A stretch of 64,000 nt of DNA from Gekko japonicus (lineage: Eukaryota): assembly GCF_001447785.1 (NCBI RefSeq), contig NW_015172065.1, positions 146,430 through 210,429 of the forward strand, written 5' to 3'. Position numbers and translations under genes: made by a program. The notes below the pieces were generated by a model, which was given only the letters and a program-made list of their open reading frames with translations, made no database searches and was not told where the DNA came from. Shown here one piece after another: positions 3,471 through 64,000 of this stretch (the stretch's first letter is position 1; every line of letters starts with the position of its first letter).

Positions 3471-5052
3471 CTAGTCTTCACAGTCTGTCACCAGAGCCCT
3501 CACTTGTTGTACTACCTCCACAAACTCCCTCATTGCCTCAGCATGAAGGTTGGGGTCTTGTGCCAAGTGCTTAAAAAGATTGGCGGGTGTAGCAGTGCGT
3601 AGGGCCTTGGGCATAGGTATCTGAATGGGCAGGGAAATGTTTCCAATCAGGAAGTGCTTAAGATATTTCTCCTGCAGGGCAGCACGCATGAATAAGAGGA
3701 TGTCCTGCAGCCTTTGCGCAATATCTTCACAGGCCCAGTCTGACAATGGCTGAAAGAGCAGGAGATGCATCAGACAAGTCTTGTAATGGTAGTCAGTGAG
3801 CACAGGGCTCTTCCCATCCGATGGTCTGGACTCCTTGAGGTAGATGATGATCTGTAAACATTTCAGGTGGCAGCTCTCCTCAGGGGCTCGCTGTCTTACC
3901 CATTCGAAAAAGAGCAGCTCCTGGATTGCAAAGGTCCTCTGCCAAACTGTACCAGCTGAACGGTCCATCTCAGCACCCTGGGTGGCCAGGAAAACTAAGC
4001 TGTCTCCTTGCTGGACTCCAAGTATGATGTCAACAGAGATTGTCTTTCCAGATCTAAATGCCAGGTTCAGCTTGCATGCAGTGTTGGAAGGCTTGGGCAG
4101 GAGATCAAGATTGTACTTATAACTTATATTTTTCCAGGCCTTCCTCACAAGACTCTGGAACCAGTGGATGGTTTTATCCACATCTAAGTGGGAGCTGGTA
4201 CACAAAACATCCATGAGGAAGGCACCTTGCTTGTCTTCACTCAGCGTTTGCTCAGGATGATGAAGGAAGCATACCACATCCCCTAGCAGCCTTTCTCTCT
4301 TGCACATACACTCCATCTCCACCATGATGTGTCCATGTTTGCTTGAGGTACCCTCAGAATCACTTGTTTCCAGATGGAAAGAGNNNNNNNNNNNNNNNNN
4401 AAGAGTGTCCTTTGGGTGGCTCTACTGGCACCAGTACACTGAATGCCTTGGACTGCTGTGTGTGCCATCCTTCAAAGGCACTGTCCACACCAATACAGTT
4501 CGCCAATGAAGGAAGGGTGTTCTGATAGGGAAGGTCATTCTGGCAGGCCTCCAGCAAGTCATTCACAAACAACTCAACAAAATCGCACAGATGGGTTAGG
4601 TCGCTGGTGGCAACATCTGTATGGCGGTCATAGAAATCCTCTATCACTTTTTGCCTGTTGCCACATGTTTCACTTTCCATGTCAGTATCATCATCCTCCT
4701 CCTCTCCACTGGTACTACTGGAGGTATCAGTGTTAGAATCATCACAGGGTTCCTTTTCCGAGGTGTATATGTAGCCCACTAAGAAGGCTAGAAGGATCAC
4801 ATACTGCCACACATCCCAGGTTTCATCATCCATAGGCCGATCAGTTGTAATCCAGTCCTTTGGAGTCCGCAGCAGCTTCGAGGTCCAGCCTTTCTGGTCA
4901 AACTCTGTCTGCAGGAGCTCCATTTCCTGTTTCATCCGCTTCTCATGGTCATGGAGCCGGATCAACGTGGCCAAGTCTGTGTTGTCACTGACCATCAGAG
5001 GGTGGTGGACCAGAGTTAGCACAGCCAGGAAGATGAGAGGGCCCCAAAGCAT
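3471..5052 (-). CDS. ITPRIPL1: ITPRIP-like 1 (signal peptide, coiled coil, TM helix, Mab-21/cGAS-like domain); single coding exon, 519 aa after closing the N gap
   Basis: ORFs 4360..5052 and 3471..4325 join across the N run 4384-4400. Motifs: MLWGPLIFLAVLTL signal, WQYVILLAFLVGYIY TM, IGVDSAFEGW, PPKGHSFHLE, ECMC..GDVVCFLHHP, SCHLKCLQ, YHYKTCLMHLL, LKHFLIGN. Splice acceptor (polypyrimidine + AG at 5072-5071) lies 18 nt upstream of the ATG. Head-to-head with SNRNP200, as in human. Confidence 0.9.
4384..4400. other. Assembly gap (17 N), probably spurious
   Basis: Both flanks share the 5-mer aagag. Confidence 0.9.
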
Positions 5053-22899: not shown

Positions 22900-24620
22900 T
22901 GTATTTATTTATTTTATTAGATTTATTAATTGCTCAACCCCGCAAGCAGGCTCTGGGCAATTTACAACCTCAAACAGATAAAACAAATAAAATATAGTTA
23001 ACATAATAAAATCGTCGCAGTATATTAATAAAACAATTCGGATGGTGATCAACCATAGGAAGAAAAGGAGGGTGCCAGTCTTAACTGTTGCTGCCCTCAA
23101 CTAAAAGCCTGGTGGAATATTTCTGCCTTACAGGCCCTGTGGAATTGTATAAGATTCTGCAGGACCCTGATGTTGTTCAGCAGAGAGTTCCATCAGGTTG
23201 GGGCCAGGACCAAAAAGGCCCTGGCCCTACTCGAGGACAGCTGGACCTCCCTAGGGCCTGGGATCACCAGTAAGTTGTTATCAGCTGATCTCAGTGCTTT
23301 TTTGGGGACATATTGGAGGAGGCGGTCTTGAAGATAACGTGGGTCCCTAAACACTTAAGGCCTTAAAAGTCAACACTAATACCTTCAACCTGACTCGGTA
23401 TTTCACAGGTAACCAGTGTAGCTGGCATAGCACAGGTTGTCTATGTGCTGTCCGTGTTGTTCCCGCCAGGACTTGCACTGCCGCATTCTGAACCAGTTGG
23501 AGCATCCGGGTCAGTTCAAGGGCAGGCCAGCGTAATGTTGCATGGATTACTGTGGCCAGGTCAGGGGACGACAGGAAAGGGGCCAGCAGCGATATCGCCT
23601 TGTACCAATGTTAGAGAGAATTGTTATAAAATGATGTATAGGTGGTACATGACTCCGAAAAAAATTGCAGCCTGACAGAGAACACTGGTGTTAATGGCAC
23701 CTCGTCTAGGGCTGGAACCTCAGTCCCGGAACCCTCCCCCCCCCAGCCACAGAACCTCCATCTTCCCCGGATTTAGTCTCAGCCTGCTCTTCCTTAACCA
23801 TCCCGCCACAGCCTCAAATCCCTCAGCCAGATGTTGCAGAGCGGTAGCCAGGTGGTCATCCAAGAGCAGATATAGCTGGGTGTCATCTGCATATTGATGA
23901 CACCCAAGCCTGAAACTCTGGGCCAGCTGGGCGAGCGGGTGCATATAGATGTTAAACAACATCGGGGAGAGGACTGCCCCCATGTGAACTTAGAGGACAG
24001 CTCTCCCCCCAGTGCAACTCTCTGTCCCCGACCATGGAGAAATGAGGAAAGCCATTGCAAAGCTACCCCACGAATCCCCACGTCGGCAAGGTGGTTGGTC
24101 AAAAGGTTGTAAACAACCATGTTGAACACTGCTGTGAGGCTGAATAACAACAACAGCACTGACCTGCCCCGATCCAGTTGCCTATGGAGATTAGGGCGAC
24201 CAACACTGTCTCCGTCCCATGACCCTGGCAGAAGCCAGACTGAAATGGGTCAAGTGCTGATGTGTCATCCAGGAAACTCTGGAGCTGTTCGGCTACCACT
24301 CTCTCAATCACCTTACCTAGGAATGGCAGGTTCGAAACTGGGCAGTAGTTGGCTGGATCATATGGATAAAGTGATAGTTTCTTTATGAGCAGTATAATCA
24401 CAGCCCTCCTTAAGACCCTCCAGAAAGACCCCTGTTTCCAGGGATAGACTGATAATGTCCTCTCCGTTTCCAGGGATAGACTGATAATGTCCTCTAATGG
24501 GCCCCGTATCCTCTCATTGCCAGTTTTCACCAGCCATGAGGGACACAGATCCAGGGGGCATGAGGTTGGTTGAACAGATGTAACAGTTATACAGTGTAGC
24601 TCTTTGCAGAGTAATGTAAG
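22900..24620 (-). mobile_element. L2-clade LINE, degenerate RT and 3' end
   Basis: NYCPVSNLPFLGKVIE, DPFQSGF..GHGTET, GAVLSPMLFNIY, HQYADDTQLY, LRLNPGKMEV; (attt)n tail near 22900. Confidence 0.88.
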
Positions 24621-25382
24621 CACAAAATGTCAGATCGTTTTGAAACTAAAAAAATAAATAAAATGGAGTTGTTCAGGAGGGCATTCTTATAATATGGAAT
24701 AAAGTTATCATCAGCATCTGTGAAACCAAAGCAGTTTTCTTTACATTATTCCTTGTATACGACACTGTTGATTGCATTGTTGTCACATGATTTGCATGCA
24801 TTTACTGTCATATTGTATGTACGATATTGTTTAGTGCCTTGTTCTCTACCTAATTTTGTTTGCTGTTAGTTATGTTCCTGTTGCATGGTTTAAAATTATG
24901 TAATCTTCCTGGAGTCTCAAGTGAGAAAGGTGAAAAAAGGAAAGGAAGGAAATATAAAACCGAAACTGAAGACATACTGCAGCTGTGAGTTCCTAATGAT
25001 AACTCCATTTAGAAGTGCCAAAGGGACTCACTGAGATTGAGACAATGGCCCATGCAGGCCAGGGGCTCCTGCCTTCCTAGGGAATCATTATGTGCCCCAT
25101 CAAGCAGCTGCACATACAAGCATTCTTTACTGTCCTCTTTACTGAGTGAAGACAACAGTGGGCAAGTAGAGAGTAATAAAGGACAAGTGCCAGCAGCTGG
25201 AATCACACATACGTTGGCTTCACTTCCATTGGGAATGCACATCCCCAAGACCTGCTTCCTGAGTTCGTTTATCTGGAGGTGCCAGGGATTGATCCTGTGA
25301 CTTACTATGTGCAAGGCCACTGAATTAGACCAAAGGGTTGGAGCATCTGCTCCATGAAAGAAGGCTAAGACATTTGTGGTGT

Positions 25383-25514
25383 NNNNNNNNNNNNNNNNNN
25401 NNNNNNNNNNNNNNNNNNNNNNNNNNNNNNNNNNNNNNNNNNNNNNNNNNNNNNNNNNNNNNNNNNNNNNNNNNNNNNNNNNNNNNNNNNNNNNNNNNNN
25501 NNNNNNNNNNNNNN
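25383..25514. other. Assembly gap (132 N)
   Basis: N run. Confidence 0.99.
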
Positions 25515-26645: not shown

Positions 26646-26733
26646 ATGTCAGCCTTGCTGCAAGCCACGGATGGGAACTCCGAAGGGATACAGCCAAGAG
26701 CTCTGGCAGGGACACCCAGTACTGAGAGTGGAG
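26646..26733 (+). CDS. Candidate first coding exon of the PITX-like gene (MSALLQATDGNSEGIQPRALAGTPSTESG)
   Basis: ATG with A at -3 and an upstream in-frame stop; strong donor GAG|GTAAGG in phase 1, matching the phase-1 acceptor at 35533; upstream acceptor ...ctctcatacag at 26605; weak resemblance to the PITX3 N-terminus (AGTP). No transcript evidence. Confidence 0.5.
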
Positions 26734-28324
26734 GTAAGGCATGAAGGAGAAGCGTGTTCTGAAATACCATGTGGCCTGGGAACTTTGTGAACCTGACCCT
26801 GAGGATGGGTGTGTCTAAAGATGTGTTCTCAAGTCCATTCGTGTAAATGAGTTACAGCATAATATACCACGGGCTGAATTTTTTTCAAAATTGTTTGAGA
26901 AAGGTACTGTTTCCCATGGCGTGTGTACACATTTGTCCTTCAGTCATTACCCAGCAAAAAGGTTTGAGTGGTTTTTGAAACCATGGGTAACCTTGCAAAA
27001 TCTGTTAACCAGTAGTGAAAATTAGAAGCGTGAATATACTGCAAGTCAAAAATAAAGAGTCTAGTATTCATTCTGCCATAACTTTTTGTCAGCCAGAGCT
27101 AACTTTCATTTATTTATTTATTTTATTGTTTGTTTATTAAAATATTTATATCTCACCTTTCCTTGTGCCTCAAAGTAACTTAAAAGTTACAAATAAAACA
27201 TAATTAAAAACCAATATACTAAACACCCCCAGATATCTCCTTCTCAGTGATCCCTCACTTAACTCTCTAAAGAAAATGAGCATCAAGTGAGTGTCTGCCT
27301 CCAGCCATAGCCAATTCCTCTTAGAAATAAACACTCATAAAGGTTATTTTCTGATCCATGGTAGCAAGTACAGATTGTAAAAAAATGAACCATGGTGCCT
27401 TTAAAGTAAAATTAAAAAAGAGGTGCTGGAACTCTCAAGAGGGAAATTAAGTTTTCAATCTGTATACTGAAAACTCATGAACTTTTAAAGATTTTTAAAA
27501 GGATTTTGTCGAAGAGGTTCTGGAACTCCGTTCCAGTGCATTCCCCAAGAAAAAAAGCCCTGGATTAAGTAATCATGTGGAATCAAAGAGGGTGAAACCT
27601 GTGAATCTAAAGGACAGACTACGAGATATTTTTTAACAAGTTGAGTCCAGGTTCCTGCATGTACAGCTCTGAAGTGGGACAAATAACTCCCCTAGGGGTC
27701 GTTTCAGTGCAGGAAAGTGGAGGAGGGATAAGGCAGGGACCCCCCCTCCCATACTATGTTCCTGATCCAGGTCAGGGGCCCATAGACTTTTAAAATGACA
27801 TTCTCCACAGCTGCTCTGGAGGGGAGTGAGTCCCTGGACCCGACTAATTTTAAAAGTCTGTTGTAGTTTGGGCCTAAGGGAAGATAATAAAGAAGCACAG
27901 ATAAGAAGGAGCAAAAGGCTATGAGCGGAATCCTCCAGACCGGTTTGTGCTGCCAGAGGCAAGTACATTTTCTAACGGAACAGATCCACAGCATCTGACC
28001 TTATGCTACAAGAAAGTTTTGCATAGGTTGACCATAGGAGAGCATTGGGTGGGCACAATTGTTGATGTGATCTACGTCACTGGGGTCAATATGACTTCTG
28101 GAATGGAGCTGGTATAATTGTTCTGTAATAAATGAGCCTAGATTTGGGAGGTGGTGCAAGGTACTTTTTTAACCGTCCAATTGATTCCTGCCATTCTCTA
28201 ATGATGACAGTAGGGGGCAAAAATTGTGTCTTCAAGAGATTCTCTGCACACATGCACATAGTAACTTTATTTAAAAAAAGAAGAAGCAAGCCCCTTCCAA
28301 GCTTACAGTTTAAAATTTAGTCAT

Positions 28325-30720
28325 ATAAGAACATAAAAGAAGCCATGCTGGATCAGGCCAATGGTCCACACAGTCCAATACTCTGAGTCACACAGTGGCT
28401 AAAAACCAGGTGCCATCAGGAGGTCCACCAGCAGGGCCAGAACTCCAGAAGCCCTCCCATTGTTGCCCCCCAAGCACCAAGAATACAGAACATCACTGCC
28501 CCAGACTTAGTGTTCCATCCATACATTGTGGCTAATAGCCACTCATGGACCTCTGCTCCATGTTTATCCAGTCCCCTCTTAAAGCTGTCTATACTTGTAA
28601 CCACCATCACTTCCTATGTCAGTGAATTCCATGTGTTAATTACTGTTTGGGTGAAGAAGTACTTCCTTTTCTCTGTTCTAAGCTTACTGCTCATCAATTG
28701 CATTGAGTGCCCACAAGTTCTTATGTTGTGAGAAAGGGAGAAAAGTACTTCTTTCTCTGCTTTCTCTATCCCATGCATAATTTTGTAAACCTCTATCATA
28801 TCACCCCTCAGCTGTCGTTTCTCTAAACTAAAGAGCCCGAACCTTGTTAACCTTTCTTTATAGGAAAAGTGTTCCATCCCCTTAACCATTTTAGATGCCC
28901 TTTTCTGCACCTTTTCCAGTGCTATGATATCTTTTTTGAGATTCAGTGACCAGAACTGTACACAGTATTCCAAATGAGGCAGCACCGTCGATTTATACAG
29001 GGGCATTATGATACTGGCTGATTTTCCATTCCCTTCTTAATAATCCCCAGCATAGCATTTGCCTTTTTTTTTTATTGCCGTCGCACATTGGGTTGACATT
29101 TTCAGTGAGTTATCTAAGACTCCAAAATCTTTCTCCTGGTCAGTCTTCCACCGGTTTGGACCCCATCAACATGTATTTATAGTTAGAATTTTTTGCTCTA
29201 ATGGACATTACTTTGCACTTGCCCCCACCACGTTGAACCTCATTTGCTACTTTGACACCCAATCACCCAGCCTGACATATTCCTCTGGAGTGCCTCACAA
29301 TCCTCCCTTGTTCTCACCACCCCGAACAACTTAGTGTCATCCGCAAACTTAGCCACTTCACTGCTTACTCCCAACTCCAAACCATTAATGAAACAGGTAA
29401 AAAGCACCAGACCCAGTACCGAGCCCTACGATACCCCACTGCTTACCACCCTCGACTGTGAAAACTGCCCATGTATATTCACTCTCTGTTACCTGTTAAT
29501 CACCCAGTTTTTAATCCACAAGAGGACTTATCCCCTTATCTCAACTGCTGAGTTCACTTAGGAGCCTTTGATGAGGAACTTCATCTAAAGCTTTCTGGAA
29601 GTCTAGGTAAACAACATCTAATGGGTCACCCTTGTCCACATGTTTGTTCATCTCATCAAAGAAGCCTAACAGATTAGTGAGACAAGATCTTCCCTTATAG
29701 AATCCATACTGATTCTTCCTCAATAGTTTTTGTTCATAATGTGCCTACTAATTCTATCTTTAATAATGGATTCCACCAACTTATCCGGTATTGACCTTAG
29801 ACTGACCGGTCTGTAATTTCCCGCATCTCTTCTGGAACCTTTTTTTTTTTTTTAATGGGGTTATATTAGCTACCTTCCAAGTCCTCAGGAATGGAGGCAG
29901 ATTTTAATGATAGATTGCATATTTTTGTCAGGAGATCTACAAGTTCTCATTTGAGTTCTTTCAGAACTCTTGGATGTATACCATCTGGGCCTGGTGATTC
30001 GTCAGTTTTTAATTTGTCCATCAGTTGTAGGCAGGGGTCATTTAGTAGAACAAGAGGTGCAGGAGTTCATTAGCATAACTCATTCGCATAACTTATTTGC
30101 ATATGCCACACCCCGACATCACCAGAAGTGTGTCAGAAGGCAACACCCACCACTCAGGCTCCACTGGACTGTTTTGGATTGCTAGCTATTGGAAGGAGGG
30201 GGAACATCCAGATCTGTCCTCGCAGAGGAGGGAGAGCTTGTACCTGAATAAAACTTGGTCTTAAAGGTGCCACTGGACTGTTTGGGGCTGGGGGGCCAGG
30301 GGGAGCTTTGCAACTTACCTGGCTGCTTCTTGCTCTGACTGAGGGCTGCTGGGAGCAGGGGGTGGGGCTTGTTGCATGTGCCCGCCCCCTGAGCTCTTTA
30401 CTGCCGGAGCTCCGCTCCTGTGCACTCGTGCAGGAAATGACCCCTGGTTGTAGGACCTCCTCTCTTGTCACCTCAATCTGACTCAGGTATTCCAACACCC
30501 CTCCTAAAATTGGTGGTTCTGAAATGGGTGAGCACCTCCCATCTTCCACAGGGAAAACAGAGGCAAAAATGCATTCAGCTTCTCTGCCCTTTCCCTATCA
30601 TCCTTTAGTAATCCTTTTACCCCTTGGTCATCCAAAGGCCCCATTGCCTTCCTGGGTGGTTTTCTGTCACTAATGTATTTGAAGAAATATTTATTGATGG
30701 TCTTTATGTTTTATGTAGAA
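28325..30720 (-). mobile_element. CR1 LINE, degenerate ORF2 and 3' UTR, interrupted by a MITE
   Basis: QYGFYKGRSCLTNL, DVVYLDFQKA.D.VPH, PHLEYCVQFWS, LEKVQKRA, LRGDMIEVYK. Confidence 0.92.
30032..30446. mobile_element. hAT-type MITE nested in the CR1
   Basis: TIR CAGGGGTCATTT/AAATGACCCCTG; TSD gttgtagg. Confidence 0.9.
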
Positions 30721-31084
30721 GTGAACTTGTGCACTTTGGGAGTTTTAGAGGTCAGAGAAACTTTGCATACGACATATAACTGCTCTCTTTCAGCCTATGC
30801 TAATTAAGGTCTACTATTGGTTCTGACCCCCCCCCCCGGGCAAGTTTGGACATCAACAAGGCCTTTTTCTGTGGGGCACCAGTATTGTAGAACAGCCTTG
30901 CTGAGGATGTGAGGCAGGCCCCTACTTGGAGGGCTTTCCAGTGCCACTGCAAGGGTGAATAATTGAAAGGGGCTTTTGGGATATTGTTAGATTAAGATTT
31001 GTTTTTAATTACTTTTGGCTTGTTTCATATTTGTTATTTATTTGTCCCCTGCTTTGTGTCTTTGGGGAGAGAGACAAGATAGAT

Positions 31085-31650
31085 ATTTTTTTTTTAGAAC
31101 ACAATTTTATTTTTCATGAAAATATTGACATGTCATCAGTTCCATTAATGTTTCAATTTTTACCCCCAATATCCCCACTTTACTCTCCCCCTCCCCGTGG
31201 CTTCCCGCAATGCTTCCCCCCTCGTCACTCCAGTACACCTTAAGATAACATCATATTCTAGTTTCAATATTGTTCTAAATATAATAGATTGTGCTTTACA
31301 TCCCAGTTCTTTTCTAGGTAAATTTTAAAGTATCTCCATTCCTCATAGAATTCCTGATCTTCTTTGTTATTCAATTTTTTCGTAATTTTGTCCATCTCAG
31401 CCATAAACAAAGTTTTTTGTATCCATTCTTCTAACTCTGGAATTCTTTCTTGTTTCCAACATTGTGCATAGAGTATTCTCGCCGTTGTAATCAGGTACCA
31501 GAATAAAGTTCTTTTTGTAATATTCAATTCTTCCATTTTAAGTCCTAAGAGCAGAATTTCTGGTGCTTTTTTAAAGGAACATTTCAAAATTTTTTGCATT
31601 TCGCTGTGAACTCTAGTCCAAAAGTCCACAGCTTTTTCACATGTCCAAGT
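31085..31650 (-). mobile_element. L1-clade LINE 3' end
   Basis: ORF 31264..31629 (WTC..FWTRV...TTARILYAQCWK) followed by a poly-A tail. Confidence 0.8.
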
Positions 31651-33764
31651 TAGATTTTTTTTTTAAATGAATGAATACTCTAGGACAAATCATGAAGAAA
31701 AAGTGAATAGACAAAATGTATCCCCTTCTTCCATATTGCTAGAATTCAGGGTCACACCAAGACACTGACTGGCAATAAATTCAGGACAGTCCCAAGAAAA
31801 TCCTTCACACTGTGCACAATTCATAGAGAGAATCCACTCTCACTAGACGTGGGGATGGCTTGTCGAAGAATTGGACAAAATGGCAGGTGGATTGGTAGCT
31901 GTTAATCATGACAACTAAATAGAACCTCCATGTACAGAAGCAGTATGTCTCTGCATACTAGATGGGCAGGTTGTTGCCGTCAAGCCATACCTGTGAACTG
32001 CTGAACTAGGTGGATCCTTGGTCTCATTTATCCAGGCAGGTCTTACCATAGCTATGTTAAACAGAGGATCCAGCTGTTTACATTTAAGGTCTAATGAAAA
32101 TATACTACGCTTGCTGTCAGGGAGGAAGATGGATAGATCTGTCAGCAGCCCAGGAACTGCCTCTTCTTTAGGCTGAAACCCAACTGCCATGTGCCATCGC
32201 TCTCCAGTCTGTGAGGGCATCTGAAGTTCCAGAGGCTCAGAACAGTGTGTCCTGGTATAGTAGACTGTTTTGCAATGTACCTCTTCGCTGTGTGAACTGA
32301 TACATGTAAATATTCAGGATTAGCTGAGATTAAATGAAAGATCTTTTAAACTCCTGATTATGTCAGCTTCCGGCTACACTCATAAACACATCCAACATTT
32401 CGGGTATACTAAGCAATGGTTGTACTTTGTGCGCAAGGCCTGTGGAAAATACAGAACAGCTGGAAATTGTTCAATATATTATATTTCTACTGGGGGGTGT
32501 AGCCTTGGCAGTGTTCTGTTGCTGCTGCTGTCACCACTCCATTCTGTGAAACTGTGGCATAACTGTGCAACTGAGAGCATATGGGTACAAATTAAAGATT
32601 GGATTAATTGAAAGAGTTACATTTTAAAGGAGAAATTGCTGGGATGACATGATGAATACTGAACAATCTTAAATGAAAGGCTTATCCTTATAGCTGCTAA
32701 AACAGACATAAATTACACTTTGAAAAATGACAATTTATATTATGAATCTCAAAATGATTATTAATCCAAATTGATATCTTACTGTTTCCTTTTGTAATCT
32801 TTGATGTTTACTTTGCAACATGAGTTTGGTTCAAGTGAAGTAAGGGAAAGGCAACCAGTTTTTGCAGACCCAAACACATATACACTGTCCAAATAAATGC
32901 ATTGGCCTTAAAGCTGGGAAAGTTCAGCCAAGTGATTTTCTGTTAATCGTTATGAGAAGATGACATAAAATGATTAGGCATTAATTGACATTCAAAAATC
33001 AAATTAAATCCAATTTTGTATATAAAAATGTTAGTAAAACTGCTTTCGTCCCTTTGTAAAATCTGTATTTTCCAACAGTTTTTGGATAGAACCATTTTCT
33101 CTTATCACAACTGAGACGCCACATGTTACTGTTATTCACATGAGTGACAGACTCCTGCAGCTGCACATCTGAAAACAGAGGAGTGGGGAGAATTGGCTTG
33201 AAGGATGAAAAATGTATAACTAACAGTGCCATCCTATGCAGAGTTATACCCTTCTAAGTTAATTGAAGTCAGTGGTCTTAGAAGGATGTAACTCTGCTTA
33301 GAATTGCACTGTAAATACCACATAAAATTCAGTTTGGAATGCTTAACATTCATCGTTCATTTTATTGCATATCATCAGGAAAATAAAAGGTAAGTACCTC
33401 TCTGGAACAGCACCATGGAGGACATAACATTACTAAATGCACATTACTAAATCACATGTGAGTTGCAGGTTCTCCTCTGTTCCTGCACTCAGATCAGAAC
33501 CACAGTGCACACGGAGAAGAGGCTTTAGCCCTCCTCCCTGTGCCATTTCCCCAACCCGAAGAGTCTCAGGGCACTATTTTGGAAAACCCATATGTTCCCT
33601 AGTATACATGCGGGTTTCCCCAAAAGGCTCAATACCACTCTCCTGGGACTATTTCAGCCTGGGGCAGGAAGCCGGGGCAGGAAGCTTGTTGGATATTACC
33701 CCCGTCAGTGTCCATGTATCCAACCAGTCTCGGGTTGTCACAGGCTGAGATCTTAAGTTTTAAG

Positions 33765-35125
33765 TCAGCTGTTTTTATGAAGTATCTAGTCAGTCTCCTT
33801 ACAGCATTCCAATCAGAATGATTTGGTGAATCACTGTTTCTGCATAGGATTCCAACAGCTGCAGAGATATCAGGTCTTTACACTGTGCTTAGCTAAAGAA
33901 GTTTGCCAATTGCTTCTCTGTATTGCTGGTTGCTCTCTAGCAACATTCCACCTTCAAGCTTGAGGTATGCTGGCTCAAGAGGACTACTGACTCCATGCTT
34001 TAGGCCCAGGGACTCTGCAAGGTCCATAGTCTTGTGTCTTTGGTTCAGGAGAAAATTCCCATTCTCAGTTCTTTCAATTTGTATTCCAAAGTAGTGGTTC
34101 AATGCTCCCAACTGTTTGACTTCCACCTCTTTGTTCAGGTTATCTGCAATTTCCTGAACATCTTTTTTGGTTTAGCAGCATAATGACAGTCCATTCTTAC
34201 ACGCCAATACATACTGATACAGTCCATCTTTAAGCTTGGCAAGTAGGCAGGTGTCTGCCTTTCCCTGTGGAATGCCTTGGCTTTGCAGAAATATAATTAA
34301 TTTCTCAGTCTATGCTATGGCAGCTTGTTCCTCAGGCAAATCTCCACTGAAAAGGGCTGTCCCAATGTCCAGGTGCTGAACATGCGTTCTTCTTGCTGCT
34401 GCTATACTTAGTAATGTCCTGAAGGTGGCGTATTTGACAACAGGTGTAGGCTGTTCAATCATTTATTTGCAGTTCAAGGGTTCACACTCAGGATGCACAT
34501 TTACATGCAAGGTATACTTTTCAGGTAGTACTCCCTTATTGCTCCTCTGTGACCTTCTCATAGGAGTCTCCTTCTTCTCTGGCCTAGCTTGCCCTGCCTC
34601 CCCTTCTGTTTGTGGGGCATCTTGTTGACCTGCCTGTGGACAGGTGGTCTCTGCAGGCAGCCAAATGGCCATATCTGTAAAAGAGACTCCAACCTCAGCT
34701 TCTGGAATGATTTGAACCACCTTCAAGCTTGGAGCACATTGCTTTCATCAATATGCACATTCTTTAACTCAAAATGCTTTTGGATTCATAACTCCATATC
34801 CTTTTCCACCTCTAGCATACCCAACAAGGACCCCCACTTCAGCTCTGGTGTCCAGTTCCCCCCATCTTTCCTTGGGTATATGAGCAATAACTTTGGACTC
34901 AAATGCCTTCAAATGTCTTAGGCCTGGCAGTCTCTGTTTAAAGCACAGTTCAAATGGTGTTTTTCCTGTTGCTTTGGAAGGCATTCTGTTGTATAGATAA
35001 GTTGCTGTAGTTACAGCTTCTGCTCAACAGTGGTCAGGCAGGCCACAGTGTGTTGAATGCTCCTGTTAAGACGCTCAGCAGAGCCATTTTGCTGAGGAGA
35101 GTATACCACACTTGTATTATGCTGT
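33765..35125 (-). mobile_element. Degenerate Ty1/copia pol fragment (integrase C-terminus to RT)
   Basis: YSPQQNGSAERLNRS, EAVTTATYLYNRMPSKATGKTPFEL, GELDTRAE.GVLVGY..GGKGY, HLDI.TALFSGDL, YREAIGKLL; integrase precedes RT, the copia order. Confidence 0.85.
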
Positions 35126-35444
35126 GCCCCCCCCAGCATCTCTGATCTTACATCTCACACTGTCTTATGGAATCTGATCTTAGAACAAAGGGAGCAGGAA
35201 GAAACCCCCCCAAAAAAATGCCTATATGAAAAGTATCAGGTAACATCACCCAACTATGAACTGAGCAATGACCAGGCTAAAGGGCACTGCATTATTGAAT
35301 AGGATTTCCCCTTCTAGCGTGGGAACTTCTACTCAACATCTCATAGGTTCTAAGTTAACTAACTACAATTAGCATAGACAAACAAACAGGTTAACTCTTT
35401 CATGACACCAGGAAGTGAACTTGCAAATACCCCAACAAAACTAA

Positions 35445-36053
<609 letters not shown>

Positions 36054-36238
36054 TAGGGTGGCATTGTAACCCAATAAGGTTCCTGGCTTCCCCAGCCTCC
36101 ACCCCCCAAATCTCCAGGAGTTTCCCAACCTGGATCTGACAACCCTACTGCCCCATGCTCTGCCGGCAGCCAGAGGACCTGGCAACCCTAACTCTGGGGG
36201 GATGGAATTCACCGTTCTATCAGGAAACACTCTGACCT

Positions 36239-36241
<3 letters not shown>

Positions 36242-36293
<52 letters not shown>
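36242..36293. repeat. (TAA)n microsatellite
   Basis: About 17 perfect units. Confidence 0.98.
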
Positions 36294-36696
36294 TATTAGA
36301 AGGAAACACTCTGACCTGTGATCGACCCAAGATTGCCAGGAAGGCAGTGTGCTAAAATGGGTCCTTCCAGGCACCTTGCTTTCTATCAAATGGGATGTAG
36401 AATTTACATAGCCAACCCATGTTTCAAACTGCTAGACTGCAACGAGGAATTTGCCTTGCCAGATTTATTCCACCATTATCTAATACAGCTAGGGGCCAAA
36501 ACAGATGTGCCGGTGTTCATGGGTCTGCCCCATGGATGCCAACACCATTTTAGAGCTAAATTTAAAAATGCCACAAGGGCAAGGAAAGATTGCCTGGTCC
36601 CACCGCACTGCGAGCCTGGTCAGTATCAGGCCCTTGCAGCATTTTTAAATAGCCGAGTGCAGGTCTCAAATGGTGTCAGTGTTCATGGGTTGGACC

Positions 36697-37185
36697 CAGG
36701 GCTATTTTTGGGCAGGAACGCACAGGAATGGAGTTCCGGCTGGCTTCAGAGTTGGCCATGCCCACTACAGCCAAAACCTCTGCGTGCGTGGCTACAGAGG
36801 GAAGGCCTGGAGAGTGACCCCCCCCGCGACTGGGCTGGGGGGGCTCCGGAAGGATCGGGGAGGCATTTAAATGCCTCCCCATGCCTTCCCTGGCCTGTCC
36901 AAGGGTTGGCTTGCCCGGGCTCCCCATAGCCGCGGGGCACCTGGGTGAGCCAAAGGAAGGCAGTTTAAACTGCCTCCCCTCCCTTCCAAGGGCTGGCTTG
37001 CCTGGGCTCCCTGCAGCCAGGTGGTGCCCGGCCAAGTCAAGGGAAGGCATGGGGGTGTGGCCTTATATGCTAGTGAGCTCCACGGTCAGGGGTGTGGCCT
37101 GATATACTAATGCATTTCTGCTGTTCGGGGTGGCCTATTATGCTAATGAGTTCCTGCTGGGTTTTTTTCTACAAAATAAGCCCTG
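36697..37185. mobile_element. hAT-type MITE in the last intron of the PITX-like gene
   Basis: CAGGGCT termini; TSD gttggacc; ATGCTAATGAG motifs. Confidence 0.88.
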
Positions 37186-37758
37186 GTTGGACCCATGGAC
37201 ACCATAACATCTAGTTTGGCCCTAGGTTTCTTTTTTTGCAGCCACCAACAGGTTGTTAGGGCTTTAGTTGTCTGGTAATCTGTAAAGTGTTCATGGAAAT
37301 TTCCAGAACAACCAATTTCAACTGTAATTTAAATAAACAAGGCACACAAAGAAATACATCCTAGGTGGGCCTTAATTCACTGGGCTGGCTATTCTAGTCC
37401 CCAAGTTCTGAGCCAAAGGCCAAAAGTCCTTTAACTTGCACCTCCAACCATGCTCAGACAAGTACTTGAAAATACAGGAGAAACCAAAGTCAGCCCATGC
37501 GGTACCTAGTAAAGAAAACAACTTTGAATAATTAAATACTTAAATTAGCTGAGGCATAGGAGAAAGAGGTTAAACACCCTCTCCTCCAGTGATCCTTGAT
37601 CTTCAGTGCACCTGTTTGGAACTGCTAAACAGTTTTTACAACACCTGAAGGGAGAACATAATCTTTAGAGGCAATGGCCATCCTTCAAGCAATCACTGAA
37701 CAGTTATAACTGCTGCAATATAAACAGTACAGAACACTACAGTTTATTTAGATACATA

Positions 37759-38189
37759 CAGGGGTCATTTCGGGGGGGATCCCGGGGGATCGCAGTTCCC
37801 CCGGGTGAGATTCGGAGGGGCTGGGCACACGGTGAAGCCCCGCCCCCTGCTTCCGGTCAGGGTAAAATGGCAATTTGACGCACCCTGTAAGTGCTCACGG
37901 TGGACGGGTGTTCCTTACAGCAGTTTGGACTGTATTTTGGTCCAACACGGCTTCCCCCAGGCAGGGGGAATGACTGGCAGGCATCAAGACCCAAGAGAGA
38001 GTTGAGATTGGTGTGATCAAGTCTCGGAGGAGGCTTGTATTACACTTTGATCCCCTCTCCCGAAGCGGGCGAGCGCATTCAGGGTGTGTGGCCTCATGAC
38101 ATACTTCCGGTGATGTCAGGGGGTGTGGCATATGCTAATGAGTTATGCTAATGACTTCCCCTAGCTCTTTTTCTACGAAACGACCCCTG
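37759..38189. mobile_element. hAT-type MITE in the last intron of the PITX-like gene
   Basis: TIR caggggtcattt/aaacgacccctg; TSD gatacata. Confidence 0.9.
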
Positions 38190-38407
38190 GATACATATAC
38201 CCATTTTTTCCTCCTGAATGGAACCAAAAGTGGCTCACAACACCCTCCATTTTATCCTCATAACCTCATGTGGTAGGTTAAGCTAAGAGGGATGCCTGGC
38301 CCAGCATCATTCAGTGAGCTTTTATGGCAGAGTGGGGATTTGAACCTGGTCTCCCAAGACCTTGGTCCAATGCTCTAGCAACTCCATACTTTTCTCTCTC
38401 TTTCTAG

Positions 38408-38917
38408 GTTTGGTTTAAAAACCGTAGAGCCAAGTGGCGGAAAAAGGAGCGGCATCAGCAGACAGAACTATGCAAAGGGGCTTTTGGCTCGCCACTCAAT
38501 GCCTTGTCTGGAAATTCTTACGAGGACCTCTACCCAAGCTACACCTACAATAACTGGACCCCAAAAGGGCTGCATACCACCACCCCCATCCATGGCAAGG
38601 GGTTCCAGATCTTCAACTCTATGAATCTCAATTCCTTTCCAAGCCCCACAGTCTTCTCTGCAGCTGCAGCGGCATCCATGTCTGGCATGCCATCTCTGGA
38701 AACCTTTAATAACATGACAAGTTCTCCTGGGCCTCCCGTTTCAACATATGGACCAGGTGCTCCTTCACCGTACATGTACAGGGACCCCTGCAACCCAAAC
38801 CTAGCTGGTCTGAGACTCAGAGCAAAGCAGACACAGCCTCCCCTAGGCTATGGGATCCCACAAAGTCCAATTATAAGCCCCAGCTCCAGCCACTATAATC
38901 TGGACAGGCCAGTGTGA
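38408..38917 (+). CDS. PITX-family homeobox gene, last coding exon (helix 3 with K50, divergent OAR domain)
   Basis: Acceptor tttctAG, then VWFKNRRAKWRKKERHQQTELCK...YEDLYPSYTYNNW...PYMYRDPCNPNLAGLRLRAKQ...HYNLDRPV*; open frame to TGA at 38915-38917. Confidence 0.95.
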   Translation, partial: VWFKNRRAKWRKKERHQQTELCKGAFGSPLNALSGNSYEDLYPSYTYNNWTPKGLHTTTPIHGKGFQIFNSMNLNSFPSPTVFSAAAAASMSGMPSLETFNNMTSSPGPPVSTYGPGAPSPYMYRDPCNPNLAGLRLRAKQTQPPLGYGIPQSPIISPSSSHYNLDRPV

Positions 38918-39733
38918 TATTGTGGCCAGAAGCATGGAGGGATGAATGGATTTTTGTCTCCTTAGAACTCATTGCAGACAGATCTCGAAGATACATTTGC
39001 CACTGCAAACCCTGTGTGGAGAGTGAATGGGATTCACCAGGTGTGGACAGAAGACCTCCTTTGGCCTGCTCTGTTTTGAGGATTCATAACTTTCCTCTAA
39101 ATTGCCTTGACATAGACACCTTTCAGTGAGCTGGTGCTTTCTCTAAGGCCTCAGAATCTGGGCATGGCTGAAGCCCACAAAAAGCCAATGTAATCTGGAT
39201 TTAATTCAAATTACATTTGTTTGAGATGTCCTAAGTGTTTCTCTTGATTTAGCTCGGGGCCATTAAAGATGGTGGGATGGGAGGTCCGGTGCCAATTGTC
39301 TGAAGACTAAAGTAAGCCCATTCATTATGACCAAAAGAAACAAGCAGAACGACGAGGAGGAAACAACGAAGGACTGCAAAGAGCAGTGAGAGAAGGGAGC
39401 AGGTGTGACAAAGAAAAATCAAGGGCATTCCTGTCAGTTTTATCACACTATTGAGTTACATGGGATTAGGGCAATCATTTCTAAAATATGTGCCACCAGA
39501 GAGCTGTTGGTGTGCTGTGAGAAATAATGAAAAAAAATAACATTTCTTGTGATCCCAAAGTAGAGGCTGCCCGCTGCATCTCTGCTTGATATACTGCTCT
39601 GGCTTCTCTTCCTTCCAAATGCCTGTTGAGAACAGCTAACTCTGCTGTTTCTCTGCACTGGGTTTGATTGGATCAGCTAGTCACCCCTGATGCAGAAACA
39701 GAGAATCACCAGCCCTCATAGGAGACATACTCA

Positions 39734-40178
39734 GGTCCCTGCCACACGGCAGGGAAAACACCGGCCAAAGTGTGGCAAATTAGAGCCGCACCAAAATAGA
39801 GACGCCGCAGCGGGATCCCACGGATCCCCTTAGCCGCGGCGCTGTTGCTCCCCGGCACGATCAGATGCCGGGGAGGAAGACACAGTCGGGAGGGGGAGGC
39901 TGCTGAACTGTGCATGCCTGAGCATGCGCAGTTTGGGCTGGAGCCGGGGATGCGCCGGCGAAAGGACGCGCCGGCGATCCCACGGCCAGCTTTGATGCGG
40001 CCGTCTGGGATGAACCACCATGGTAGGTGGTTCATTTTTGCAGCGGGGTTTTGGGTGGAAGGGGTGGATCGGGGACGCAAGCACAACGCTTCCCAGATGT
40101 TGCGGTGGGATCGCGCCCGTTTGCTGCGCCCCCGATCCGTCCCTCTACCAGCCCAAAACCTCTCGTGTGACCGGGGCC
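39734..40178. mobile_element. CpG-rich PIF/Harbinger-type MITE
   Basis: Imperfect TIR ggtccctgccacacg/cgtgtgaccggggcc; 3-bp TSD TCA. Confidence 0.7.
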
Positions 40179-42353
40179 TCAGACTCATGAGAAACCCAAG
40201 TCGAGGGCTGCTCCTATATTCTTATGCATTCTAAAAGAAAAGCTGTTCAGCTGTAAGAAAGAAAAAAGCAGTGTCTCCCATTTACATTCAGACAGAAGTG
40301 CTCCATAGCTGCCAGAAGCTTGGTCAATATTGGCCTAAGATAGACAGCTGCAATTAAAATAAAAGGTTTCCCCCCTCCCTGCAGTGAGCCTTCCCTCTTC
40401 CTTATGCTTATCTAGTTATCAGTCTACTCTTGCAAGAACAGTAGTAAGGAAGGCTGTACTTCTTTTGCTTTCCACCCCTGGGCAACAGTTAGTTTTACAG
40501 GTGGGCTGCTTCAAAGAGTGAGGAAGGTGGGCCAGCTTTCCTTCCTCTCAGGCTCCCAAACTGGACTGCTAGCAAGTCCTGTGACCATCACTGGCCTTCT
40601 ACCCACCCACTCCTCTTGCCTCTGCCTTGTACATTGGGAGTGTTGGGGCGGAGCTGAGGTACCTCAGAGGGCTGAACCTGACTGGAAACTTTAGTTGTTG
40701 GATCTAATTATTCTATGGAAATGTAGAGGACTGTGATACAACCACCACAGGCATTTGGGGGATACCACCACCCATGACAAGTAACCCTCCTTCTTGGCCA
40801 GAGCAGTTTTAAAACTAGTGTTATCATATCAACCTCCAGATGTGGCCTGGCGATCTCCTGAAACTACAGCTGATCTCCAGACCACACAGGGCTCAGTTCC
40901 CCTGAAGGGAGTGATGGCAGCTTCAGAGGGCGGACTCTGGGGCATCACACCCACGTTGCACTCCCTCCATTTCTCAAATGCGCCCCCCCCCCCAGGAACA
41001 ACCACCAGAGTCGCCTTGGTGGCCCTGATGAGGCCAGAAAGGCAGGGTATACATTTTGTAAATAAATAAATAAAATACAATAAATACCTTTCGAGGCATT
41101 TCCTAAACTGGACCTAGCAGACCTCTCCTGATGTATATATTTAGTACACTTATGGTTTAGTACATGTATATTTATATGGCCCAAAGAGGGGGGAAAGAGC
41201 ATGAAGTCATGAATGAGGCCAGACCAGAAGCTGAAAGTATTATGGAGGCTCTCCGGTAAGGTGCTTGTGAGCCCCCTTCACTGAACAGCGGGGTAGGGCA
41301 CACCAGCCTCTTTCCTGCAGAGGCTCACCTTCCTCCTCTGTTGGTTGGTTGGGTCCTTCAGAAACCTGAGGACCCCAGCACTTGTCGTGCTCCATGCCAT
41401 GATCCGGACTTGTATCCACGATGACTTTGAAATCTTTTCCAATTTAACATTACTAACTTCAGTTCTGGCTACAAAGATGGAGCAGAGAAGGCAGCCCCCC
41501 GGTGGATTGCAGAGATGATGATGGCCCTCTAGCAACTTCTCCATTAATTTGCATGGGAAACAGAAAACCCTGTGCACACATGAAGCTAACTATCCACTGG
41601 TTTACATCACCAGGTGGATATGTGCAGACTGCCCAGAAGTAAAGGCTTTTCTTATCAAAGGTTCAACGCTAAGCAGAGTTATATCCTTCTAATGGATTTA
41701 GGAGGGTATAAACTGTATTTACTATAATGACACTGTCAGAACTGCAGATCCATTTTGAGTGGGGTGGTGCTATCATAGGAAAGGCATGGATACAGTTTTG
41801 AGAAACAGCCTAAACAAATGCTAGAAAAATTATAACAATGGAAACATATGCGAGCCTTTTCAATGTTTTACCAACTTGAGATGAAGAAAGTCCACTTTTA
41901 AACTAGACGTTTGATTATCTTTTCTGTGCGATTGCCTTGTGAGTGTTTCTGACATCCTTTCAATAAACCATTTTTTTCTATTTTACTACCTGTAGATTTG
42001 AACCCTCTAGTTTTACCAGTTCTGAACCATTAAAACAATAAAGTGTTGCAATTCTAGTCTAAATGACTAGTGTACAAAAAGTCACTACTAATAGTAAAAA
42101 TGTCAGGGCTTTATATCCATTAAGACCTTCCAAAAACACTTTCTGAATGGATTCATTTGTTGATGAGCCCTTGTATGTTGCAGAAGATTATGGGATTTGT
42201 TCAAGGGTACTTACTTGCTACATGGAGAAAAGTACCCTCACTTGAACAGAGGTCAAATTCACATAGAAACTGTAAAACACAAGAAGGCTGAAATGTGATT
42301 GTAAATTAACCTTCCTGTATGGTCATCAGTTAGTCCACAAAGCTGATCCAAAC

Positions 42354-47828: not shown

Positions 47829-63933
<16,105 letters not shown>

Positions 63934-64000
63934 TGATAGACACTTTCTGTCTATCCCTATAGACTCAGCTCATGAATCTTTCAGAGGTTATAAGCTTCAC

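Follow-up and report, generated by a model that had tools for sequence, protein, structure and literature searches.

Structure of the gene and its neighbourhood

The DNA analysed here (the window) is a stretch of 64,000 nucleotides from contig NW_015172065.1 of the gecko Gekko japonicus, and the gene under study is a PITX-type homeobox gene at 26646-38917. An earlier reading of the letters alone (the sequence-only reading) had described it as a spliced homeobox gene with lysine at homeodomain position 50 (K50), canonical splice sites and no stop codons. Reading and translation of the sequence confirmed this description: three coding exons carry an uninterrupted frame for a product of 270 amino acids (aa) with a K50 paired-like homeodomain (Table 1). 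The PITX signatures quoted at that stage (45 protein letters) and the terminal DRPV were all found in the exon translations.

The translations of exons 1, 2 and 3 are exactly residues 1-29, 31-101 and 102-270 of the RefSeq protein XP_015276304.1 ("PREDICTED: pituitary homeobox 2-like [Gekko japonicus]"). Because of this identity, the gene model in the window equals the independent RefSeq model. Exons of the window were used as single queries, never as a joined protein; for full length, the database proteins P0001 and P0368 were used instead. P0001, a 270-aa protein of Gekko kuhli, was the top database match to exon 3 (97% identity); it also matched exon 1 at 29 of 29 and exon 2 at 69 of 71 positions, with the exons in the expected order. 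In an alignment, the motif LAGTP..ESG of the exon 1 product was found to be kept from sharks to squamates.

Exon 2 alone matched the Pfam family PF00046 (Homeodomain) with E = 7e-15, and the full-length Gekko kuhli orthologue did so with E = 7e-23. The gecko homeodomain is identical to the canonical PITX (PITX2/3) homeodomain at 55 of 60 positions, and K50 is part of WFKNRRAKW, which is encoded at the 5' end of exon 3. Exon 2 ends with RIR and exon 3 begins with VWFKN, which places intron 2 between homeodomain codons 46 and 47. An intron at this point is usual in PITX genes. The gecko protein was not matched by the Pfam OAR model, even with the threshold relaxed to E<=10, though the LRLRAK core is kept.

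Table 1. Positions of the PITX-type gene, its neighbours and other features in the window
Feature	Position	Strand	Details
Exon 1, coding part	26646-26733	+	ATG + 29 codons + 1 base, phase 1; ends GGAG; donor GTAAGG
Intron 1	26734-35532	+	8.8 kb; GT..AG; retroelement debris inside
Exon 2	35533-35747	+	Acceptor ccctccag before GA; donor GTGAGG after ATCAGG; acidic/serine-rich linker and homeodomain residues 1-46 (35610-35747)
Intron 2	35748-38407	+	2660 nt; GT..AG; between homeodomain codons 46/47; highly repeated elements
Exon 3, coding part	38408-38917	+	Acceptor tttctag before GTTTGG; homeodomain residues 47-60 including K50 (38408-38449); conserved C-terminal motifs
Degenerate OAR core NLAGLRLRAKQ	38798-38830	+	Within exon 3
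Stop codon TGA	38915-38917	+	Sequence reading/translation
3' untranslated region (3'UTR)	38918-39762	+	RNA contigs X2 record 9, X5 record 15 and X14 record 5/6, which also span coding exons
SNRNP200 (Brr2), 5' exons	47829-64000	+	Runs off the window; PDB matches to the 200-kDa helicase of the U5 small nuclear ribonucleoprotein
Mab-21-domain gene read as ITPRIPL1	3471-5052	-	One coding exon, two open reading frames (ORFs); Pfam Mab-21_C 1.3e-9
Run of N	4384-4400		Inside the coding exon of the ITPRIPL1-like gene, in its upstream ORF (4360-5052)
Assembly gap, 132 N	25383-25514		1.1 kb upstream of exon 1
Reverse-transcriptase-like ORF (long interspersed element fragment)	24099-24623	-	Upstream of exon 1
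Reverse-transcriptase-like ORF (long interspersed element fragment)	~28614-29723	-	Inside intron 1
Short interspersed repeats	36648-36828, 37010-37190, 38096-38276		Inside intron 2
CpG-island-like stretch	39501-40400		GC >= 0.55, CpG observed/expected >= 0.6
160-aa ORF	39706-40188	-	Overlaps the CpG-island-like stretch

Downstream of the Pitx gene and on the same strand lies SNRNP200, whose start codon was placed by eye at about 47829, 8.9 kb past the Pitx stop codon. In a search of the PDB, 48781-48945 matched residues 16-70 of Brr2 (E 4e-30) and 60007-60150 matched residues 567-613 (E 2e-31). On the other side, the ORFs of the Mab-21-domain gene returned a cluster named 'IPIL1 protein' in second rank among the Atlas clusters (score 0.94), and in the PDB search generic Mab-21/cGAS matches only. 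This would fit an ITPRIPL1-like gene of unproven orthology. The position between ITPRIPL1 and SNRNP200 given by the sequence-only reading thus held good on the SNRNP200 side, by the PDB matches, and stayed unproven on the other side, where an assembly gap also intervenes. The gap, close to exon 1 as it is, could suggest that this placement is an artefact of the assembly. However, no gap interrupts the sequence that holds the three Pitx exons and leads on to those of SNRNP200, and the linkage of exons 2 and 3 was confirmed by RNA contigs (see below), so that an artefact is very unlikely.

Transcription of the gene

RNA contigs and reads of four runs (X2, X5, X14 and X22) were mapped to the segment 35200-40600 of the window; exon 1 lies outside this segment. 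Of the words sampled from exon 3 and the 3'UTR, half or more were present in 17 listed runs, and some part in 20 runs from six studies. In each of X2, X5 and X14, which come from three studies, a single contig led from exon 2 through exon 3 into the 3'UTR. These contigs skipped 2660 nt at the junction 35747|38408, with GT..AG ends, exactly as predicted. RNA contigs spanned 35531-35746 at a depth equal to that of exon 3, and the unique bins of intron 2 had a depth of about 0, indicating that the X2, X5 and X14 data are transcriptomes and not DNA. No variant letters were seen in the RNA contigs over coding exons 2 and 3.

About 525 nt of the RNA contigs lie 5' of exon 2, and coding exon 1 accounts for only 88 of them. 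The sequence TATAAAG at about 26581 was considered as a promoter and rejected for this reason; transcription would then start further upstream or in another exon. At the 3' side, the AATAAA sites first met after the stop codon are at 40358, 41061-41084 and 41962. More RNA contigs were found from 40150 on, extending beyond 40600 (1802 nt in X2, 844 nt in X5), with a depth close to that of the Pitx exons (9.6 versus 8.8 and 17.8 versus 17). They may represent a 3'UTR of about 3 kb ending near the AATAAA at 41962 (about 41.9 kb), or a separate co-expressed transcript.

Some further features were noted in the transcribed region. In the 3'UTR, the X2 and X5 contigs both show A>G changes at two neighbouring positions (39415-39416), which could be an allele or editing. 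The short interspersed repeats of intron 2 reached a summed depth of up to about 1e5 in all RNA runs and showed many variant letters; they belong to abundant, transcribed repeat families and interrupt contig assembly. The CpG-island-like stretch is the sole one in the 64 kb. It is located in the Pitx 3'UTR or downstream of it, away from both exon 1 and the start of SNRNP200 (about 47.8 kb).

Phylogenetic position, distribution and conservation

A maximum-likelihood (ML) tree of 76 rows was calculated with the model LG+C20+F+G4 by posterior mean site frequencies (PMSF) and rooted with echinoderm Pitx; exon 3 of the window was a row of its own. Supports are given as ultrafast bootstrap/Shimodaira-Hasegawa-like approximate likelihood ratio test (SH-aLRT). 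PITX1 (100/99), PITX2 (93/97) and PITX3 (97/93) each formed a clade. Outside all three, yet inside vertebrate Pitx relative to invertebrate Pitx, stood a fourth clade (100/100), within which the bony-vertebrate members (100/99) and the sauropsid members (100/100) were also grouped. The phylogenetic check proposed in the sequence-only reading thus agreed with its claim of a fourth paralog that does not belong within PITX1, PITX2 or PITX3. The fourth clade contained proteins of chimaera, sharks, rays, coelacanth, bichir, sturgeon/paddlefish, bowfin/gar, turtles and squamates. Since both cartilaginous and bony fishes are represented, the clade predates the split between them.

Fast divergence of a copy of PITX1, PITX2 or PITX3 that arose recently within reptiles, by duplication or retroposition, might explain the long branch (0.53) leading to the sauropsid members, and the RefSeq names do point to PITX2 or PITX3. 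A retrocopy does not agree with two introns at family-typical positions, nor a recent duplicate with orthologues in sharks, chimaera, coelacanth, bichir and sturgeon. When the sauropsid members were forced onto sauropsid PITX3, the cost was 73.4 log-likelihood units (lnL) and the arrangement was rejected by the approximately unbiased test (p-AU 6e-6), which refutes this origin for PITX3 at least. Moreover, the geckos Eublepharis, Euleptes and Gekko kuhli have separate PITX3 genes (P0055, P0069, P0070), and the gecko Heteronotia carries both PITX2 (P0354) and the fourth PITX gene (P0367), indicating that the gene in the window is neither of the two. A recent duplicate has next to no probability.

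The topology was ((PITX1,PITX2),(PITX3,X)), where X is the fourth clade. PITX3 and the fourth clade were joined with 94/89, PITX1 and PITX2 only weakly with 82/13. This is the shape expected from two duplications, so two duplications fit. PITX3 is the preferred sister of the fourth clade, as judged from the tree supports, the alternative being PITX2 (p-AU 0.23). Two long branches were seen elsewhere in the tree. The bowfin and gar proteins of the fourth clade sit on a very long branch (>1.2 changes/site), have lost I45 and have no Pfam OAR match. Mammalian PITX3 has a long stem branch (0.49), in agreement with the accelerated rate of mammalian Pitx3 reported earlier (PMC3296468).

With PITX3 the fourth gene shares the K50 paired-like homeodomain, the intron at codons 46/47 and, towards the C-terminus, the YNNW block, PY.YRD.C, the OAR core and the QY..DRPV end; the PITX3 region is also taken to be paralogous to that of SNRNP200. 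It differs from PITX3 by forming a separate clade, by an identity of only 40-45% over exon 3 and by its faster evolution. PITX2 has the same family membership and architecture and about 50% overall identity, but the fourth gene falls outside its clade. PITX1, likewise of the same family, forms a distinct clade, although amniote PITX1 shares P43.

Some residues mark the fourth clade. In every member, even the very divergent ones of bowfin and gar, the homeodomain is followed directly by a histidine. I45 (RIRV) is shared by all but the holosteans; the OAR core reads LRLRAK rather than LRLKAK. Within the clade, P/L1, G36, P43 and K59 are confined to the sauropsid members. The sequence-only reading had argued from a "mosaic" of diagnostic residues, and this argument proved uninformative. 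Outside the sauropsid members of the fourth clade P43 occurs in amniote PITX1 only, and since PITX1 of sharks, amphibians and fishes has A43, as have the shark and coelacanth members of the fourth clade, P43 is convergent. The DRPV terminus is also present in PITX2, in non-mammalian PITX3 and in shark PITX1; by this distribution it is the ancestral terminus of the family.

Proteins of the fourth clade are 250-295 aa long and were found under the names "pituitary homeobox 2-like", "3-like" or "Homeobox protein", as had been predicted for automatic pipelines. Two RefSeq names are wrong: XP_003229309.2 of Anolis carolinensis (P0379), "pituitary homeobox 2", and XP_066570367.1 of the bowfin Amia ocellicauda (P0227), "pituitary homeobox 3", both belong to the fourth clade. 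In a list of genes that differ between lizard populations in brain and testis, "PITX3 / pituitary homeobox 2-like" is included (PMC10740616), which is a weak lead to expression sites only. The paddlefish Polyodon spathula has two fourth-clade loci (P0336, P0374) on different scaffolds, in keeping with the additional genome duplication that its lineage underwent.

Among the 5.8 billion annotated proteins searched, no member was found from mammals, birds, crocodilians, amphibians, lungfish or teleosts, while PITX1, PITX2 and PITX3 of these groups were returned in the same lists. The absence from mammals stated by the sequence-only reading was thereby upheld at the level of annotated proteins. 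Short, high-scoring teleost proteins (Takifugu, Neogobius, Sparus and others) were considered as members and proved to be PITX1/2/3 isoforms. With the bowfin protein as query, members were recovered from gar and paddlefish and none from teleosts. The bowfin protein had come from a profile search of representatives clustered at 50% identity, in which the family is too collapsed to show its distribution. This pattern of annotated proteins points to several independent losses.

In seven gecko genera the proteins are intact, 269-271 aa long and 88-97% identical. They make up the 90% cluster of P0001, to which XP_015276304.1 also belongs. Between Eublepharis and Euleptes the identity is 94.1% for the fourth PITX protein versus 96.5% for PITX3. 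Across 27 clade members, over 40 positions of the homeodomain do not vary, nor do several C-terminal motifs. The OAR motif scored 26.4 bits in the shark member, 26.0 in sturgeon and 21.4 in coelacanth, which pass the cut-off of 20.1, and 16.3 in turtle, which is below it; gecko PITX3 scored 34.7 bits. The intact proteins and their identities show what appears to be purifying selection on the gene across geckos. An eroded OAR motif, a rate faster than that of PITX3 and one RNA sequencing (RNA-seq) run without reads might be taken as signs of a decaying, functionless remnant whose frame is still open. Against this, intact frames occur in all seven gecko genera and also in over 25 further species, the homeodomain hardly varies, and correctly spliced transcripts were obtained from three studies; a remnant is highly improbable.

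Origin, predicted function and significance

The fourth Pitx gene is a real, expressed and conserved paralog of ancient origin, and the sequence-only reading is supported except for its argument from residues. The explanation that we favour, and hold with good confidence, is that it is a functional PITX-type gene of a lineage older than the split of sharks from bony vertebrates, most likely the partner of PITX3 from the two rounds of vertebrate genome duplication (2R), and that it was lost repeatedly. The lineage would have been kept by chondrichthyans, non-teleost ray-finned fishes, coelacanth, turtles and squamates, and apparently lost by mammals, archosaurs, amphibians, lungfish and teleosts.

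Human SNRNP200 is located at 2q11.2, in a block which we take to be paralogous to the PITX3-bearing region 10q24-25; the pair DUSP2/DUSP5 links these two regions. PITX2 (4q25) and PITX1 (5q31) represent the other two arms of the four-fold paralogy. The pairing of paralogous regions by ADRA2B/GPAT2/DUSP2 versus ADRA2A/GPAM has been described in work where the ADRA2 genes, the fourth of which mammals lack, are presented, with these flanking genes, as a quartet of 2R origin (bioRxiv 10.1101/106526).

Instead of coming from 2R, the lineage could have begun when PITX3 or PITX2 was duplicated on a small scale in a stem jawed vertebrate and the new copy came to lie near SNRNP200. This reading draws on the tree, which leaves PITX3 and PITX2 unseparated as sister and has the cyclostome sequences unresolved near its base. 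Two points speak for 2R instead: the topology has the two-duplication shape, and the neighbour is SNRNP200, whose human region 2q11.2 partners that of PITX3, the other family members lying on the 4q, 5q and 10q arms. We regard a small-scale event as unlikely.

Several results weigh against the favoured explanation. When the whole fourth clade was forced together with PITX2, the cost was 8.6 lnL and the grouping stood (p-AU 0.23), so the 2R pairing with PITX3 rests partly on synteny. We infer the whole-genome-duplication origin from one neighbour in this window, SNRNP200, combined with the known 2q11/10q24-25 paralogy, and the ITPRIPL1-like gene is separated from the Pitx gene by the assembly gap. 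Judged by branch lengths, the squamate rate of the fourth lineage is several times that of PITX3. About 12% of the reads of the raw RNA-seq run X22 were sampled and no exon reads were found. As X2, X5 and X14 were positive, expression varies with the sample: the gene is transcribed in some gecko samples and not in others, and the tissues of the positive runs are coded. The losses are drawn from annotated proteins, genomes not being covered by that search, and the DNA-binding function is predicted from conserved contact residues.

The homeodomain keeps K50, the arginines of the N-terminal arm and W48, F49, N51 and R53. Because these residues are kept, binding to bicoid-type TAATCC sites would be expected, with transcription regulated as by PITX1/2/3. 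In PITX2 the OAR motif modulates DNA binding and partner contacts. Its erosion to the LRLRAK core suggests that this control by the tail is probably altered in sauropsids.

Textbooks present PITX1, PITX2 and PITX3 as regulators of hindlimb identity, of left-right asymmetry and the pituitary, and of the lens and midbrain dopamine neurons. Three is the number of family members routinely given for vertebrates. In the openly searchable literature (subscription journals were outside the scope) nothing was found that describes a fourth Pitx lineage of vertebrates. A genome-wide screen for gene losses in mammals used chicken as the reference (Kuraku & Kuratani 2011, PMC3296468) and could not detect it, because chicken is without the gene. 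The gene itself is already in RefSeq and automatic annotations, but under "-like" or wrong PITX2/PITX3 names.

The fourth Pitx gene resembles ADRA2D, Pax10 and Bmp16, paralogs of 2R age that were kept in sharks, some ray-finned fishes and reptiles, are absent from mammals and were overlooked since the model species are without them. These genes have been described and named; for the fourth Pitx lineage no description was found in the literature searched. The more specific proposal of an undescribed 'PITX4', a 2R ohnolog of PITX3 with at least four independent losses (mammals, archosaurs, amphibians, teleosts) and a tissue-restricted developmental role of its own, would seem slightly better than an even bet.

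Comparisons of PITX function between mammals and reptiles, sharks or basal ray-finned fishes may overlook a player, and the wrong names ("PITX2" in Anolis, "PITX3" in bowfin) can mislead expression studies. The fourth gene is open to direct study in established models, namely Anolis sagrei, Paroedura picta, catshark and sterlet. The repeated loss of a developmental regulator would make it a test case for how the roles of such a gene are given up or taken over by its paralogs.

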